Part shown: positions 29,898 to 38,910 of the stretch, in pieces
Layout of the letters: each line of letters starts with the position of its first letter
Numbering within the stretch: the stretch's first letter is position 1
Source of the DNA: Auanema rhodensis
Lineage: Eukaryota > Animalia > Nematoda
NCBI GenBank assembly: GCA_964057225.1
Contig: OZ059899.1
Span: 6,200,001-6,264,000 of the forward strand
DNA: 64,000 nt
Reading direction: 5' to 3'
Position numbers and translations under genes: made by a program
The notes under the pieces: generated by a model
Told to the model about the DNA's origin: nothing
The model's input: only the letters and a program-made list of their open reading frames with translations
The model's database searches: none

Positions 29898-31457
29898 AAT
29901 ATCTTTCTTTTTCCCTTTTCTTCCTTTTCTCATTCCTGCCTGAGTCAAAGCAGACCGCGTCCCTCGCTTTGCAGTCAAATGCTGGACTAGAATTCGTGTT
30001 TCGCTGTTGAGCGTTTTGGGTAGTCGTCCGATAAGTAGTCGAAATCAGGTTGGTTCCAACATGACCAAAACGGCCAAAACGAACTGAGGCCCAGCACGGC
30101 AGACGAGCGTGGGAGCCGAAACGGCCGTCCCTGACGACGTGGACACACGAGAGGCAGGCATATACAGAAACGGAGAATACGGATCGTCTTCTCTATTTTC
30201 ATCTTTTCGTGACATTGCTGCGCTGAATCAATGAGTTCGGCCTATCATTTACTGCAGCACCACTATGTTTATTCGATATCACTTTTATGAACAGAAGACA
30301 CAAATATGATTCTAGAGAAACAATGTGGTCTCTTATTGGTCGACGGTAAACAACTATTTTTAACCGGACTCATCTGACCCTGTCTTTCACGCTTCCATTT
30401 TCTGAACACATCTAGCCTACACACTCCGCTCTTCCCCCTCCACAAAACCCCTAAAAACCCCCTCCATCTCCAATCAACACCCAGCCGTTGACTTATCACG
30501 GGACCCATCCATCAACTTTGAGCCTCGACTGCTGATGATAACGGCCCGAACGGGAAGAGTGCTTTCCAAATTTAAACAATGAAATCGCGTTCGCACAGCT
30601 TCTTTTTCCATCGTACATACACATTTTGATGATGATGATAACAAAGGTACTGATCTGTGGTGACGTTAGCCATCGTGGCCATTTGAAACCAAGAAAGAAC
30701 ATCGTACAGATCGTTTCATGCATCCAGGATATAGAAGACATGAAGCAAACGTTACAGTGCGATAAAAAATAGAAGTATGAATGAAGGATTGATGATGTTG
30801 ATGATTGAACAACACCAGAAGGCAGAAGAAATATACATAGAAATGAGAGTATCTTAGACAACTAGAATGGAAGAGAGGGTGGGCCCAATCTTGTGAAGAT
30901 AGAAGTAGAGACAACTGCGAATGTGACAGAGTAAAAGAAGCAGCAACAGAAGGTTATGTCCCTATGGACACTTGAGCAGATCATTTAATGAGCTTCAGAG
31001 CTCTCCCCCCCCCCTTAGGCTTTCTCTCTCTTCCATACTTTGAACATAGGCTTATGAAGAGGTTCCAGTGGCTTATTTATAGAAACTGTTGTTAGTTTCA
31101 TTTTATAGTTGGATGAGCTAAATATGGCGATTATTCTGAGAGAGCTATTGGCACGATGGCCAATGAGTTACATATCTAGTAGATCTAGAAACTTTAACTA
31201 GTCAGAATCTACACTTTCAATTGACGTACACTTCTCATGCACAAATATACAACGCAAGAAACTCAAATTCAGCAATCTACTTTCATCGAACTATAATTGA
31301 ATAGTCTCTGAACACTGAACTATTCTTACTGTGTATTATAGTTTGTATTTTATTTCTTACTTCTTATTTTATAATATATGTATTTATATGTATAATCTAT
31401 ATATTGTATAATATTTGTATAATATAAACTATAACACAATAATGAATTTTAATAATT

Positions 31458-33011
31458 TTTATTTAATTTTTCTTTTTTTGTCGTGTGTTTTTGGTCTTGA
31501 CGTAAAGACACTATTAAGTGATACAACACATAAAATTCTTTAAAAAACTTGGAAACATTAAAACACATGGAATTACTAAAAATAAGATATTACGTGCCAA
31601 GAGAAGTATCCAGCCCCGAGTGCTACGTAACATACAATGAGGTATATGATTTTGGTTTTTTTGGAGACAGGCAGAGAGAAAATGGTCAGGAGAAATAGAG
31701 GACGTTACAATACACACAAGAAATTCTAAGATTAAAGGATTCTAAAACGGAAATAATCACTTGTTCTAGCATATCAAAGCCAACTCAAACTAACAGCACA
31801 GCGTCATTTAGTTTTTGAGGTTCATAGATAACACAATGGGACACCGGGTCCCTAGAAACAAAATAGATGAGTGGGTGACAAGATAATTTTTCCGAAACAA
31901 AATGCACAAATAGTTGATGACTACAATCGATATACTACCAGGCTTCTTCTAACAGGAGATATAGTACGGGGCATTCAGAAGGAATATTGGGGTACAGGTT
32001 TAAGGAATAGTATATTAACTAGAAGTAAACTGATTTGGGAATTCAGTTGAAATAAAGAAAATTGAATATAAGGCTAACAGGTTACAATACCATAAAGAGG
32101 AATCTAGCGAGAGACAGAGAATATTCTTCAGGATATCGGTCAACGGTATACAAGAACATTGACAATAATCTGGTTAACCACTGTTCTCTGAGAAATCGGT
32201 GGGTAACACAAGATTGCACTTGCAGTATAACCTGGCAGGCTATTCCTTGAGGCATTACAAGCAAGCACTCATTATGTTACAGTCCGAATATCATAGACAG
32301 AAGAATCTCATGAAACTAAGCATGGGGACAGGGGCAACAGAGATGGAAAATTGCCGTACACGGAATACGGTATTATGTACATTGGTACCCAGAAAAAATA
32401 AGTTTTTTTTGTGTTTTAAGATAGATTAAATAGAAAAATGGCAAAAAAAAGAGAAAATGCCTAAGGAAAAGTGCGGGACCAAGGCAGACACGACTGTGTG
32501 GTATAACAGATAACTTCAAATGATAAAAAAAGAAACAGGATTACAGCAAGATGCTCAACAATGGAACTTGTAGAAGTCAGACAATAGTTGGACCGGATCT
32601 ACTGGGCTAAAATATTTCAAAACCGAGCAGAATTGAAAGGTTTGCTTCAAAGGCAATAAGAGTGAAACATTGGAGATAAGAAGAGATTAATGGAATAGGT
32701 GCCGACAATTCTGTATATAGAATTCTCACGTTACTCCAAGATGAAACTTGAGATCGTAACATGCTATCTAATAGAGAATCGTTCCGATGATCCTTTCCAT
32801 TGGACTAAAGCTCAGACGGACTAGGCTGCTGACCGGCGCGGTATTTGCTCTCTTACATGACTTCCAGACCTTGAAAGGTCTAAGAATCATCTCGTAGAGA
32901 CAGTATGTTTAAGGGCAGTTAAAAGCAAAGAAAACAAAGAAAACCAGAAAATAACAGAAATGGAACAAGAATATTGTTTGGAATCTGAATAATGACGGTA
33001 TACACAGAAAA
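31458..33011 (-). other. Putative 3' UTR of the IER-like gene, ending near an AATAAA signal at 31463-31458
   Basis: U-rich on the minus strand with no credible ORF, ending at AATAAA followed by a very AT-rich stretch. The end point is inferred. Confidence 0.4.
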
Positions 33012-34993
33012 TCAAGGAGTTATAATAGGACAAGAGGGAGGGACCAATTCTAAAGGTACGACATGCTTGTCGAACCGGCGAATTTGGCATATACACGTCC
33101 TCAAATCGGCTTCATAGTAGTAATTAGAATGGGATATAACACGTGGTAATGAACGAGATATCATTGATAAATAGGAGAGGAAACTGATGAATATAAAAAA
33201 AACTTTAAAATACTGCCTGGTCGTACACGTACTTGATACACGTCTTACTTCAGATTCTTAATGCTGCTAGTATTCAGCAAGCGCAGTACCGGCACACTTC
33301 TATCAGAGACGCGTTGAGCTTTGTGACGAGGAGCGCTACGCTCTTCTCCTTTGCGTTTGCGTTCACCCAAACGGGCAAGAGCATCGTCCAGATCTTTGCA
33401 CAATGGTTGTGGTACAATGTCTTCATCTTCTTCGGTAGCCATCGAGCCAAATTCTAATGGCTCATCAGTAGCATCATCACAGCAATCGCCACAATCAGTG
33501 ACAGTGAACTCATGCGGTGGCGAAATCAAACTGACTTCTTCATCAAAATTGCGAGCATCAAGCTCTTCTTGAATGGCTTCCTCTAATCTGAAAAAAGAAA
33601 AAATTAATATTCATGTATTTATTAATTAAATAATATTATATTCAAGAAATGGAACAAAAAGTTCTTAACTGTTGGAACTCGTTCATATTTTCAAGAAAGC
33701 AAAAGATAAAGCACACAACAACAGATCATTCAAAATGTTGTCATCGTTTGAGCTCTGATCAGCTACGACGAGACATAGTCTCGACGGAGGTCGTCGCCGT
33801 CGAGTTTTCTACTTTCTCTGCACACAGTGGTAGAAGAGAAGAGACATATCGAAAGAGCTAGACCGATCACTTATAGATGATGATTGTGCATAACGTAGTA
33901 TGTAGTTTTAAGAAAGACAGAAACGCAATTGACACACGAATAGTGGCGGGCTGAAGTTTGAAAGAGAGAGAGAGAGACGGAAATATATACATATAATAGC
34001 GGAGGAGCCTTAATCTATTTTGATAATATAAATATTTGAAGTTATAAAAAGCTGAAAAAAGGAGAACAGAGAGAATAACAAAGACTAAGTGTGCTTTTGA
34101 GATCGAAAAAAAAGCGAAATAGAGAAAGAAGAGCAGTGAAAAGAGTGTCAGGATAGAAGACAAAAGCACACGTAATGGAGCAAAAAGGCAATTGAGAAAA
34201 GGAGGGAATAACGGAAGACAGTTATGTTGAAAAGTGTCGTCTGTTTTTGTTTTGATAGCGACCAACCGTTCAAAGCAAACATTTACTGAGAAATAAAAAA
34301 AATTAGAAGAAAATGCATCAACGTGAAAGAGAGCGGAGGAAACAACCAGCAATGTATTTGAAATTTCTCTTTCGAATGTAAGAATAAGAAAACGTTAACT
34401 ATTTCATATAACAATATGCAGGTTATATTATTATATGCGATTCAACTAGCTTGGTTGGTAGGTGAGTGACAATTTCTAAATTGACATAACAACTATGTTA
34501 AGTCTACAGTATGGTGAGTGAGGTGAAATAAATGAAAAAAAAAAACAATATTTCAGGAATAGAAATTATTTTTAAAATAAAGTTGAAAATTGTAAAAATA
34601 ATTGTTAGGAAGTTGCAGTGTTGAATAAATGGTAGCGCAAAACGGCGATTGATGAGAATTTACTAAGCACAGTAACTGAAGAAATTCAGAAATGTTTTAG
34701 ACGGCAAAAAAAAATAAAAATAAAAGGTCGTTTCGAAGTGATGATGCAGAATGTAGTGGCTTGCGCATAAAGGTCAAGAAGACATAAGTAGATTTGTAAA
34801 AATAAAAAAAAAGTGAAAGGTGAATAACATACCTGAACTTAGCATCCTGAACCCGTTTGATAACTTGAAGAACAAGAAGATTTTTGTGAATATTCACACC
34901 ACCACGTCGATGTCGCGAGTTAACTATCTTGGAGCAGGAAAGGCGAAGCAAGGCAGCGTATTCTTGCTGTAGAAGTTCCGGAGATGAAATCAT
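33012..34993 (-). CDS. IER-family (IER2/IER5-like) immediate early response protein
   Basis: Exon 34993-34833 encodes MISSPELLQQEYAALLRLSCSKIVNSRHRRGGVNIHKNLLVLQVIKRVQDAKF, matching the IER N-terminal signature (ISLxKIYxSRxQRGGxxLHKNLLVSxVL). The AG|GTATGT donor splices in frame to the TTTCAG acceptor at 33588. Exon 33587-33249 is acidic, then carries a basic NLS-like GERKRK..RHKAQR. A 65-nt GT-AG intron leads to exon 33183-33012, giving 223 aa. If that intron is unspliced, the protein stops at 33245 (167 aa). Confidence 0.85.
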
Positions 34994-35262
34994 GACGATG
35001 TGAACTTGGTAGATGAGTAGACGATAGGGATAGATAGATGAATTGCGTTGAAACGATGAGATGAACAAAGGCAGAACAGTGTGATAGTTGTTGTATTTTG
35101 TGGATATCACGAAGACGACGAAATTGTGTTGTTTTGGGGGGGAAAAGGTTTTAACAAGATGATGAGTTACAAATTTGTGCTGCAGTTATATGAATACTGA
35201 GACACAAATCCTTGAGAGCGTGCAGTCAAGAAGCAATACTGCTGCACAGAATGACCTGAAAT
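34994..35262 (-). other. 5' leader of the IER-like gene, starting at a TTTCAG acceptor (cis or SL trans-splice site, AG at 35257-35256)
   Basis: TTTTAATTTCAG|GTCATT. The 262 nt between the acceptor and the start codon contain no ATG. Confidence 0.6.
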
Positions 35263-35839
35263 TAAAAAACAATTAGTTAACTGGTTGAGAAAAATACGAA
35301 AAATATATAATATATATTTAGTTTTTTTTCATTTAGAATGGTACAAAAGATGCGAGAATGCATTGTAAGAAATAGGATAGAATAGAGCTTAAAATGATGA
35401 GAGAATAAGCATTTCTTAATAATAAAATGTATAGAAGAAAAAAAAGAAATATTCTTATACAAATATTTCTAATAAAAATAAAAGCTGTACTAAGCCTTGC
35501 GCATACAATTTTGTTCATATGAATGCACGTATTTCAACTTTGACAGAATGACATTCAAAATAGTATGCGGCTTTCCTTCTCGAAAGATATGAAAAGATAA
35601 AAAGAAGACAAAACTAAGAAAAAAACTAGTAGAACATAGTATGATATACATCGGAAGAAAGAGAATTCGGCAAAAAAATCTTTTGGCTAACGGCTATTCA
35701 GGCCGAGGATATTCGATCATAGATGGCCAAACATCGAGGTCGTTGATGTTAGACATCTGGCATGATTTTAATTCTTATTTTAACTAAAGGGTTTTGTCAC
35801 GAAAACTGTAAAGAAAAATTAAGAAACATCTTGAGCATC

Positions 35840-35897
35840 TGACGTAGTTGACGTCACTCACGTCTAACGTGAAACTGTAAATTATAACGACACGTCA
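35840..35897. promoter_or_regulatory. CRE/ATF site cluster
   Basis: TGACGTA (35840), full TGACGTCA (35849-35856), CACGTC (35859), AACGTG (35866) and CACGTCA (35891): five ACGT cores in 58 bp, 0.6 kb upstream of the IER acceptor. Confidence 0.55.
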
Positions 35898-36539
35898 GCT
35901 GCTCTATGCATGCAAAACACAAGATTCAAGATACACAAAAACTATCAAGTTGGATTTGAAAAAGAAGAAAAAAATCTTTTTCAAATTCTATCATCTAGTG
36001 GGATATCGATCTTTCGCCCAACATGTTAAATATTGTGTTGATGTCCTTTAGAATTCACAATTCAAATACAAGAATGAGATGAAGAAGACATTTTATGATA
36101 TTGAATACCAGGCGCTAAAACACGATTTGACATTCAGATATAAGAGAGATGATGGAATCGAAGCAATTGATTTTTTGAGCCTTCGTTTCTATTCAAATAT
36201 AAAACAAATTAATCCATGTTCATTCTTTTGTTTTCTTTTTATATCTCAATACTATTAAATTATACCAATAAAATAAGGATCGAATTCAATTAATCCTGGA
36301 CACTTGGTTATCTTAAACTACTGTAACTCTAATAACCGATATGGACATAACTAAATTGGAATACGCTGTTGGTAAATTGCATATTTACCAACTTTTCCCC
36401 CATTGTGTTGAAATGTCAGAGTTAATCAACTCGTTTTTATTAAATAATTTCAATTTTCATTATTAATATATGTTAAAAATTGAAGTCAAAAGTCAAAGTG
36501 CTATTATGTCCAGAAAATTGATCGATAAAGCGCTTGACT

Positions 36540-36950
36540 AGTGAAAAAGCTGTCGGCTGAGCACACGGCTTGCCGGCTGCTCGGCCGCGGTTGTCTGTCT
36601 CACAGACGAGGCTCTGCTCAGCAGCATGTATGTAAAGCATACTAATATGGAATCAAGAAAATGAAGGATATTCAAGAATATATTCGGTAGTATGTATAAA
36701 GCTTCAAATATAAGCTTACCTGAGTTTGGTGAATATATATACAGGAGAATAGGGAGAGAGGAGGATAGACCCGTGAGAGATAGTGCCCCGCCACACCGAC
36801 TGGCTAGCCCTGGGGGCGGAGCGATTCAACCCAGAAAGGGGCGTGGCGCGAGGCGAGCAGACCGCAGAGAACGAGAGAAAAGGCGTGTTAGGGACGTAGG
36901 GTAGGTTATGCAGCATTAGGACAAACCGAAGAGCCCCAGAAGAGCGCCGA
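36540..36950 (-). promoter_or_regulatory. GC-rich promoter island of the IER-like gene (GC boxes plus TATA-like element)
   Basis: One of the most GC-rich stretches in the window. Sp/KLF-type boxes GCCCCGCC (36785-36792), GGGGCGGA (36813-36820) and GGGGCGTGGC (36838-36847). A TATATATA at 36741-36734 lies downstream of them in the gene's orientation. Confidence 0.55.
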
Positions 36951-38910
36951 AGTAAGATGAAAGAGACAATGAAGATTTGTTAAGATTAAATTTTATATTG
37001 CTGTATTTTGACTTCACTTGTAAATTAGGTAAATACAGCTTAGTTGTTATCCACAATTCTTCGATTGTTTTCAAAGAGATGGATTTTTCCTAAGGAAAAG
37101 ATGCGAAATCACGGGCAAAAAGGGCAGGCAAATCAATAAGCATGCTTCTCTTTGTCATCGGCTTCGTAATTTTAATCAAAAAATGTTTTATTGCAATCAT
37201 TTTTTCATTTTCTACCATAATGAACAAAAGTTCATTTTAATGACAACTTCATTTTCTTAGAATTGTTTCCTTCTTTCTCAGCAAGAAGAGAAAGCTGGAA
37301 ACTACAAAATCTTCTAGGCCATATACACAGGTTTCTAAGTAGCAGACGATAAGGACAGTTATTCTATGGAATGGCACCCTGCCGTTGAATCTCCTGCTGT
37401 CAGTCAAGCTTTAGCATCATCTTTCTCTCACCTTTTTAAGGTATTTCGAGAGAAAACGAAAAGAAATGATAGAAAAAAAATGCGAAATTACAAAAAAATG
37501 AAAGAACGAAACCAAATATGAGTTACAAATACTTGATGACAACCTACTACATAGACAGACCGGCTATCACTACTGAATAGATCATTTCAACTGATAATAA
37601 AGTGCCTAGATATAGTTTTTTTCAACAGAAATATCTTATTTTCTGTTCAATTTTTCGAAAGAAAAAATAGAAACTATACAAACATAACGATTGCGAAATA
37701 ATTATTTCTTTTGGATGATGGATTCTTGCAGAATTAGAAATTCAGAAAAGCTAGTCTCTATGGAACAGAAGAAGTCGTTTGCAATCCGAGGAAAACATAA
37801 GATGATTGAGCTAGAAGAGAAAGCAAGTAGTATGTTGTGGAAAAATAGACGTTAATGGTATTGTTTTGAAAAATGTAATGGATTTAAAGAAGACCGTTAA
37901 CTTGCACAACGAAGAATGAGCAATTCAGATAAGTTTAGAAGAAAGAATAACAAATGGCAGGCGATGTTCAGCTTGTAAGATGATTTGTTAAGATTTGAAA
38001 AAAAGATGAAAAGAAAACATTTTAGTTATTAAAATCACAAGAATCAAAGAAAGAATACATACAAAGTAAAAGTTAAAGAAATAAATATGTTTTGTGACAT
38101 AATTGAGTAATAATTGAGCAGTAAAATAATTCGCTTTTATAGGTTGATTGAGAGTCATAATCTAAAGCTTACGAGACCTAGGGCTAAATAAAGTTTGCAA
38201 TATGTGTTGAAATCTGGCGCTTACTCTCAAAAACAAAATTATTGAGTCATTTTGGTGTGATGTATAATGATGGTAAAATCTAATAATATAAAGCAAAAAT
38301 TGCTGAAAATGCAACATATAAAGAAGGAACGAAAGAAGCATGTTGAAATGAATCTCGATGAGTGATAACTAAAAAGGGAGGAGAAAAACAAGAGACTGTT
38401 GAACTTGAAACTTGATATGAATTGTGAGTAATATTGATTCTAATAAAAATACAACAATTGATAAGAAGGAGTACGATAACGACGGTTAAAGGAAAAAAAT
38501 GTAAATTGACGGTGAAGCAAACAAGGAAACTTATTAGAAAGTTTCGTAAGACTAGTACGGAAAATGGGAAAAATAGTAAGTTCATAATTACACATGAAAA
38601 TGGCAGATAGGAGTTGCTTTCAATCTACGAAGAACAGAATGAGTCAAGCTGCTACGAGAGCAGATGATTGGTGAATGAAAGAGATAGGTTCCTCCTCTCA
38701 GCCGTAGTTGGTCATCATCATAACAAACAAACAACACGCAAAGTGATGAAACACAGCGAGAATATTCGAGTCCAGAGGTCAGTCATTCTGATGTAATCGC
38801 AGCCTTACGCTGCTAGACAGTGGCGCATGGTGTAAGACGCTAGTGAAGAGAATATAGAGAAAGTGAGAGAATAGATGCGCTTCCTATTATAAACTAGATA
38901 TGCAACTTTG

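Follow-up and report, generated by a model that had tools for sequence, protein, structure and literature searches.

IER and SERTA proteins as regulators of PP2A–B55

Nearly all work on IER proteins has been done in vertebrate cells, and whether they inhibit PP2A–B55 or redirect it is still argued. The vertebrate IER2, IER5 and IER5L genes are intronless, human IER5 is 327 aa long, and Drosophila Taranis is a SERTA-domain protein. The helical hairpin of IER5 blocks the substrate groove of B55 and inhibits PP2A/B55α in vitro, with both IER5-N50 and full-length IER5 inhibiting pTau dephosphorylation, and in human cells the N50 hairpin plus a bipartite NLS is sufficient for function (PMC10491241). 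The IER5 residues that contact B55α have been defined together with their mutations: S14A, K17E and L30E abolish co-IP, K29E, which affects a salt bridge to B55 D116, greatly reduces it, and mutation of L15 has no effect on B55 binding (PMC10491241). The SERTA proteins (SERTAD1–4 and CDCA4) have a related helical hairpin that uses the same B55 pocket (PMC10491241, PMC11446282), and grafting a SERTA hairpin onto FOXO3 made FOXO3 a B55 substrate (PMC11446282). FAM122A and ARPP19/ENSA also regulate PP2A–B55 through helices in the B55 substrate groove; they are unrelated in sequence and touch the catalytic subunit as well, whereas the IER5 hairpin touches B55 only (PMC10491241). A C. elegans orthologue of FAM122A already figures in a published study (PMC10943098).

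Here, we describe a locus in a 64,000-nt stretch of the Auanema rhodensis genome (contig OZ059899.1, positions 6,200,001 to 6,264,000; hereafter the window), which is a real, expressed, single-copy, three-exon IER-family gene. As the family, its fold and its B55 mechanism are already known, this is an expected IER member, and the added interest lies in its minimal architecture and in the apparent absence of the family from Caenorhabditis.

The A. rhodensis gene has three exons and is transcribed

The gene lies on the minus strand and encodes a product of ~167 aa from two coding exons (34993–34833 and 33587–33245), with an mRNA that extends over ~36,791–31,450 according to transcript contigs. 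Its parts are as follows:

36720..36791, minus strand: 5′ UTR exon 1, non-coding, pyrimidine-rich, 72 nt (36791 is the minimum 5′ end)
35256..36719, minus strand: 5′ UTR intron, 1464 nt, GT..AG, containing an ACGT/CRE cluster and a conserved block
34833..35255, minus strand: exon 2, 423 nt (5′ UTR 35255–34994, CDS 34993–34833)
33588..34832, minus strand: coding intron, 1245 nt, phase 2, splitting an Arg codon just past the hairpin
33245..33587, minus strand: coding part of exon 3, stop at 33247–33245 (translation 33586–33245, 113 residues plus stop)
31450..33244, minus strand: 3′ UTR, ~1.8 kb, 3′ end approximate, conserved AATAAA at 31463–31458

The preliminary description placed an intron-containing gene at 33012–34993, an interval that contains the complete CDS and 233 nt of the 3′ UTR; the intron was confirmed, and the gene itself proved to be larger. 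Four runs of one study supplied four transcript contigs of ~2.6 kb, in which 33587 is joined exactly to 34833 across the coding intron; the borders of this intron read CT..AC on the plus strand and hence GT..AG on the minus strand. The same contigs skip a second intron (35253 to 36718), which becomes canonical after a 2-nt shift (36720 to 35255). They start between 36748 and 36791 and end at ~31456–31513, i.e. ~290–345 nt below 31800, so that exon 3 measures ~2.1 kb in total (33587 to ~31450). The run type was guessed as RNA rather than recorded as such, and we accepted the contigs as RNA because both GT..AG introns are missing from them and a second, intronless copy is absent from the genome. 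Inspection of the splice borders by eye places the end of exon 2 at 34833, before GTATG, and shows TTTTTTCAG preceding the start of exon 3 at 33587. The presence of two introns distinguishes the worm gene from the intronless vertebrate IER genes.

Exon 1 is ATG-free and 96% identical to its counterpart in Auanema sp. JU1783. The ATG at 34993 is the first of the mRNA, which has a 334-nt 5′ UTR lacking an upstream ATG. The coding part of exon 2 comprises 53 codons plus 2 nt and encodes the IER helical hairpin, and the N-terminal peptide originally quoted, SCSKIVNSRHRRGGVNIHKNLLVLQVI, is indeed present in the minus-strand translation of 34993–34835. Exon 3 encodes, in order, a helix extension, the acidic block PPHEFTVTD...DEPLEFGSMATEE, the basic cluster RKRK...RHKAQR and the tail VPVLRLLNTSSIKNLK; of the features noticed before, both the acidic region and the NLS-like cluster RKRKGEERSAPRHKAQR are found in the translation of 33586–33248.

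The product belongs to the IER family

The exon 2 peptide alone matches the Pfam IER family (PF05760) with 32.4 bits (E 1.5e-7, cut-off 22.6), and the same profile in a six-frame scan finds one locus, at 29 bits, in the 181-Mb genome. The sole PDB match of the hairpin peptide is chain D of 8UO5, human IER5-N50 with PP2A/B55α (E 8e-6). Together with the introns, these matches bear out the proposed IER2/IER5-like identity in a nematode. Profile checks against both IER and SERTA had been suggested, and only the former gave a match: SERTA (PF06031) has none at E ≤ 10 for either coding exon and none above the cut-off of 25 genome-wide, where the best score is 15.3 bits at a different locus. The worm protein therefore differs from the SERTA proteins in carrying an IER-type signature with no PF06031 match. 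The exon 3 peptide, acidic block included, has no Pfam family.

AlphaFold2 predicts the 53-residue hairpin as a helix (5–26), a basic loop (27–32) and a second helix (33–52), with a pLDDT of 72. For full-length analyses we used P0001 of Auanema sp. JU1783 as a stand-in; with a 21-sequence alignment its model has helices at 5–28 and 32–70, pLDDT reaching 94, and beyond the hairpin a short helix (115–125) and a disordered tail, the remainder being mostly disordered. With a fold as small as this, structure searches were uninformative. The 53-aa model gave no Foldseek match in the PDB at E ≤ 0.001, and VIA-align against 48,161 chains returned 133 at Z ≥ 5, all of them generic helical hairpins among which IER5 was not singled out.

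The hairpin was compared with the published family consensus. The helix-1 pattern [I/L]-aliphatic-x-aliphatic-S-aliphatic-x-K-aliphatic (PMC10491241) is matched by L15-L-R-L-S19-C-S-K22-I, in which worm C20 takes the position of the mutation-tolerant human L15. For helix 2, the consensus [H/K/R]-x-x-L-[L/I]-x-[S/N] (PMC10491241) is fitted at six of seven positions by H36-K-N-L39-L40-V-L42; the last position is L and not S/N, as it is in most nematode members. Human IER5 (8UO5; PMC10491241) likewise has the N-terminal helix–loop–helix, the S/K/L(I) triad and the HKNLLV motif of helix 2, and its R25 is retained in the basic RGG loop of the worm. In both proteins the middle is acidic and disordered, and a C-terminal basic cluster is of RKR type. 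The worm protein differs in being half the size, at 167 aa, and in missing the LISIFGSSFSGLL-type C-terminal motif.

Nematode relatives and an old intron

With the hairpin alone as the query, a word-indexed search gave one relative, P0001 of Auanema sp. JU1783, a protein of 164 aa named 'unnamed protein product' that carries PF05760. It is 96% identical to the hairpin exon product and 75% identical to the exon 3 product, and stays colinear with the A. rhodensis product over the exon junction. The single match reflects a limit of the tool rather than rarity of the family, since exhaustive and profile searches gave about 40: when 1.84 billion representatives were searched exhaustively by HMMER with P0001 as the query, 26 proteins passed E ≤ 1e-3, and a profile search found 42, of which all the named ones are nematode. 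The survey across Nematoda called for at the outset thus yields both short and long forms in at least 15 genera. Short forms (135–170 aa) occur in Auanema, Mesorhabditis spiculigera, Dictyocaulus viviparus and Angiostrongylus costaricensis. Long forms (300–360 aa) occur in filariae (Dirofilaria, Loa, Wuchereria, Onchocerca, Acanthocheilonema, Cercopithifilaria, Elaeophora and Setaria) and in the non-filarial Ascaris lumbricoides, Parascaris, Toxocara, Anisakis, Gnathostoma, Dracunculus and Thelazia. A few unnamed proteins of 300–320 aa, whose hairpin is vertebrate-like and which end in LVATM, probably come from other invertebrates.

Four blocks are common to the members, namely the hairpin, PPxEF[TS]V[TR]D followed by DEPLxFGxEAxEE, RKRK and a hydrophobic tail. 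With the clade III proteins in particular, the A. rhodensis product shares the hairpin pattern RLSCxKxVNS..RGG..LHxNLL, the PxEFxVxD...PLxF..A.E block and RKRK, as well as the place of the intron after the hairpin. The clade III proteins, at ~300–360 aa, keep LTGLISVFNSGLSVV and a CNPLIC end, whereas the A. rhodensis gene is a short form; LTGLISVFNSGLSVV is kept in long forms only. The C-terminal IER motif (LTGLISVFNSGL in the clade III long forms) is absent from the A. rhodensis protein and from the other short forms. The vertebrate version of this motif is of the LISIFxSxFSGL type, which LTGLISVFNSGLSVV resembles.

The post-hairpin intron falls in the same codon in Auanema sp. JU1783, Mesorhabditis and Dictyocaulus, and probably in Dirofilaria, and several fragmentary clade III gene predictions turn to junk exactly at this point. 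The shared position and the broken predictions indicate that the intron is old in nematodes. Between the two Auanema species, dN is 0.017 and dS 0.54 for the hairpin exon (ω ~0.03), and dN is 0.138 and dS 1.46 for the coding part of exon 3 (ω ~0.09). On these substitution rates the gene is under strong purifying selection, greatest on the hairpin. Apart from its small size, nothing suggests that the locus is a chance ORF, a pseudogene or an annotation artefact, and the spliced transcripts, the strong purifying selection, the orthologues in at least 15 nematode genera and the conserved intron position exclude this with near certainty.

Neither the exhaustive HMMER search nor the profile search returned a protein from Caenorhabditis or Pristionchus. 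This suggests loss or strong divergence, short of proof, and an absence from Caenorhabditis would explain the neglect of the family in nematodes. By the same token, PP2A–B55 in parasitic species (Ascaris, filariae, Toxocara and lungworms) may be controlled in part through a component that is possibly missing from the model worm.

The novelty attributed to the gene at first is overstated. Automatic annotation already assigns orthologues from Ascaris, filariae, Toxocara, Dictyocaulus, Mesorhabditis and Auanema to IER or SERTA, with labels such as 'Immediate early response 2' (Ascaris lumbricoides A0A0M3IM06), 'IER family protein' (Acanthocheilonema viteae) and, in UniProt, 'SERTA domain-containing protein' (Toxocara, Loa, Parascaris and Dracunculus), and a Wuchereria re-annotation table lists one nematode member (PMC11678661). 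Our literature searches found no functional study of a nematode IER/SERTA member, in agreement with the preliminary description on this point.

Both faces of the B55 interface are conserved in sequence

The 8UO5 alignment gives a constant offset, in which worm residue n corresponds to human residue n-5. At 12 of the 14 IER5 interface residues the worm residue is identical or conservative:

Human I10/I13/S14/K17/R25/L30: worm L15/L18/S19/K22/R30/I35
Human H31/K32/L34/L35/V36/V39: worm H36/K37/L39/L40/V41/V44

The two exceptions are K29, which is N34 (also N in Auanema sp. JU1783), and R9, which is A14. The three essential sites S14, K17 and L30 are S, K and I in the worm, and among 18 nematode hairpins the first two are S and K in 17 each and the third is L or I in 17. 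Taking only the contacts validated by mutation (I10, S14, K17, R25, K29, L30, H31, K32, L35 and V39), nine of ten are identical or conservative, and K29 is the one that is not.

On the other side of the interface, the A. rhodensis B55 gene was located with a 19-residue PROSITE-type signature, which gave one match at 89% identity. The gene is split into short exons, which were confirmed by alignment to human B55α chains. All 16 residues checked (14 IER5 contacts and two patch residues) are identical to human B55α:

E91, I92, E93, D116, H179, M222, L225, V228
F281, I284, S287, Y337, E338, D340, F343, K345

These alignments indicate that both faces of the hairpin/B55 interface are conserved, and that the hairpin binds PP2A–B55 is well supported in silico and quite probable. 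Alternatively, the hairpin could have been kept while B55 binding was lost, serving another partner, as has been proposed for some SERTA proteins in transcription or cell-cycle complexes. The change of K29 to N in a loop contact, the loss of R9 and the missing C-terminal IER motif would fit such a switch, which is nevertheless improbable, as the three essential residues are among the contacts kept, none of the checked B55 residues has changed and the hairpin is very strongly constrained; moreover, within the superfamily conservation is lowest in the loop (PMC10491241).

Possible inhibition or redirection of PP2A–B55

We consider it probable that this single-copy IER gene encodes a protein whose hairpin docks on B55, whose basic cluster makes it nuclear and which alters the substrate choice of PP2A–B55. 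The hairpin would dock on the top face of the worm's B55, its SUR-6 orthologue, in the groove that recruits substrates. The NLS-like cluster, in which RKRK is nearly invariant among the members, is predicted to give the protein a nuclear location, and its presence there would alter substrate choice either by competitive inhibition or by redirection. The worm protein retains both the hairpin and the NLS-like cluster, the two parts that suffice for IER5.

The term adaptor was used for this gene in the preliminary description. The B55 link stands up in sequence on both faces of the interface, but the IER5 hairpin occludes the groove and inhibits (PMC10491241), so that adaptor names one of two mechanisms. 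A true substrate adaptor would anchor PP2A–B55 through the hairpin and recruit a phosphoprotein such as HSF-1 through the acidic block. Published work on such hairpins speaks for adaptor behaviour, with the FOXO3 graft (PMC11446282) as a precedent, and the acidic block must do something, since it is conserved from clade III to clade V with an ω of ~0.09. Against this, the hairpin sits on the substrate-recruitment surface itself and both the N50 fragment and full-length IER5 inhibit pTau dephosphorylation, other regions were dispensable beside the hairpin and NLS in human cells (PMC10491241), and the acidic block has neither a Pfam match nor a known partner. We regard recruitment of this kind as possible, though doubtful, and lean towards occupancy of the groove with inhibition as the direction of the effect; the acidic block may then be a candidate second contact, possibly a second docking site. 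With a 167-aa IER form reduced to the hairpin, one conserved acidic block and the basic cluster, one IER gene and one recognisable B55 gene, the worm would be a simple genetic system for the question of inhibition versus redirection.

Promoter, introns and 3′ UTR

Four regulatory features were compared with Auanema sp. JU1783:

36785..36870, minus strand: core promoter, with GC boxes CCACGCCCC (36846–36838), CTCCGCCCCC (36821–36812) and GGCGGGGC (36792–36785)
35870–35842, minus strand: ACGT/CRE cluster, four ACGT cores, with a perfect TGACGTCA at 35849–35856
35811–35690, minus strand: conserved intronic block, ~80% identity
38714..38751, minus strand: distal upstream element, 38 nt, 95% identity

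The sequence upstream of the contig 5′ ends is 84% identical in Auanema sp. JU1783 and unique in the genome, and a 69-nt run (36811–36743) that covers the second GC box together with the greater part of the pyrimidine-rich exon 1 is 100% identical, with one genomic copy. The true promoter is at ~36,785–36,870 and does not adjoin the ATG. Part of the GC/TATA promoter first proposed holds in the form of the three GC boxes between 36846 and 36785. Its TATA-like run TATATATA (36740–36733), although conserved in Auanema sp. JU1783, was rejected as a promoter element: it lies 13 nt from the donor of exon 1 and cannot set the transcript start, since it sits inside a transcribed 5′ UTR exon.

The CRE cluster does contain its four ACGT cores, but these sit within the 5′ UTR intron, ~0.9 kb past the transcript start, and the cluster, at 40% identity, is not conserved in Auanema sp. 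JU1783, whose intron carries three ACGT cores at the corresponding place. The distal 38-nt element contains TGTTTGTTTGTT and an RCGTG core, and its position suggests that it may belong to the IER gene. The 3′ UTR holds 19 islands of 12–31 nt identical to Auanema sp. JU1783, one of which is a Pumilio-type UGUACAUA site at 32382–32363; the coding intron has no such islands against the same species (45% identity, longest identical run 7 nt). AU-rich elements were considered as a sign of an unstable message and rejected, as ATTTA occurs at 1.1 per kb in the 3′ UTR versus 2.8 in the window background, which also sets the worm 3′ UTR apart from that of human IER5. Rfam gave no credible match over 28.5–39 kb.

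As judged by conservation, regulatory constraint on the locus is clearly dense, and nothing marks the gene as immediate-early. The stimulus-response control attributed to it earlier finds no support in an ATTTA-poor 3′ UTR, intronic CREs that are not conserved and a TATA-like run that is exonic. The chances are about even that the gene is instead a constitutive regulator tuned post-transcriptionally. This reading draws on the same three features and on the GC-box promoter, on the conserved 3′ UTR islands with their Pumilio-type site, which point to post-transcriptional control, and on the two introns, which would make induction slower than in the intronless vertebrate genes. However, rapid induction is possible without AU-rich elements, ACGT cores do occur at the equivalent place in Auanema sp. 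JU1783, and the conserved promoter and intronic blocks could be stimulus-responsive. A broader proposal would make the rhabditid short form a natural minimal IER (hairpin and NLS) with a nematode-specific acidic docking block, acting as a nuclear PP2A–B55/SUR-6 switch that is lost or unrecognisable in Caenorhabditis, its dense cis-constraint reflecting tight stimulus and post-transcriptional control; we offer this combination tentatively and think it rather unlikely to hold as a whole.

Surroundings of the gene

In a crude open-frame scan the surroundings of the gene are poor in genes, and ~25–30 kb on either side has no protein-like frames, although small exons could escape such a scan. In the 14-kb locus of Auanema sp. 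JU1783, the IER gene is the only one called. The exception in the open-frame scan is a receptor gene at the left edge of the window.

Conserved non-coding elements in and around the IER gene

Comparison with Auanema sp. JU1783 showed the following conserved features in and around the minus-strand IER-family gene:

36743-36811, minus strand: identical run of 69 nt (100% identity)
35690-35811: conserved block in the 5′ UTR intron (~80% identity)
38714-38751: distal element of 38 nt (95% identity)
31450-33244: 3′ UTR with 19 identical islands of 12-31 nt
29930-30040: conserved non-coding block of ~110 nt (~93% identity)

The 69-nt run, which occurs only once in the genome, takes in a GC box as well as most of the 5′ UTR exon, which is rich in pyrimidines. 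The run is unchanged between the two species, whereas synonymous sites elsewhere in this gene have reached half to full saturation. This run could be a core-promoter element or a 5′ UTR translational control element. The intronic block, which had no match in Rfam, includes identical runs (e.g. TTTTCGTGACAAAA); around CAGATG/CATCT it forms an imperfect palindrome. In the distal element, which lies ~1.9 kb upstream of where the transcript begins, the forkhead-like motif TGTTTGT is repeated in tandem, and there is also an RCGTG core.

Among the 3′ UTR islands, UGUACAUA at 32363-32382 is by sequence a Pumilio/PUF-type site, and a UACCUCA heptamer (31638-31660) resembles a let-7-family seed match. 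A further island is a conserved palindrome, AGGGACCCGGTGTCCCA, at 31837-31853. The block at 29930-30040 lies 1.4 kb past the poly(A) site within a GC-rich patch, and neither a protein-like frame nor an Rfam match was found for it; judged from its sequence, this conserved stretch is non-coding.

Divergent members and misannotated entries of the IER family

Three database proteins from Logan and JGI contigs (P0018, P0028, and P0029) form a divergent subgroup in which the RGG loop is gone from the hairpin (KNQKVASGLQRNFF). Because these proteins nevertheless retain the PPLEFTVTD...EPLAFGCEA block and RKRK, their sequences suggest that conservation of the acidic block need not depend on the loop contact. 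Several clade III nematode entries (among P0010-P0012, P0017, P0019, and P0024) are truncated mis-predictions that run from the hairpin exon directly into the intron, and two family entries (P0010 and P0036) have been named automatically as 'Dimer_Tnp_hAT domain-containing protein', an unrelated label.

B55/SUR-6 orthologue

The gene for this PP2A regulatory subunit was located in the genome of this worm:

G000:C3:5946000-5948000 (L004 8713-9949), minus strand: B55/SUR-6 orthologue, with exons similar to human B55alpha

Its structure consists of short exons of ~40-50 codons separated by small introns, and the similarity to the human protein is high in the aligned exon stretches.
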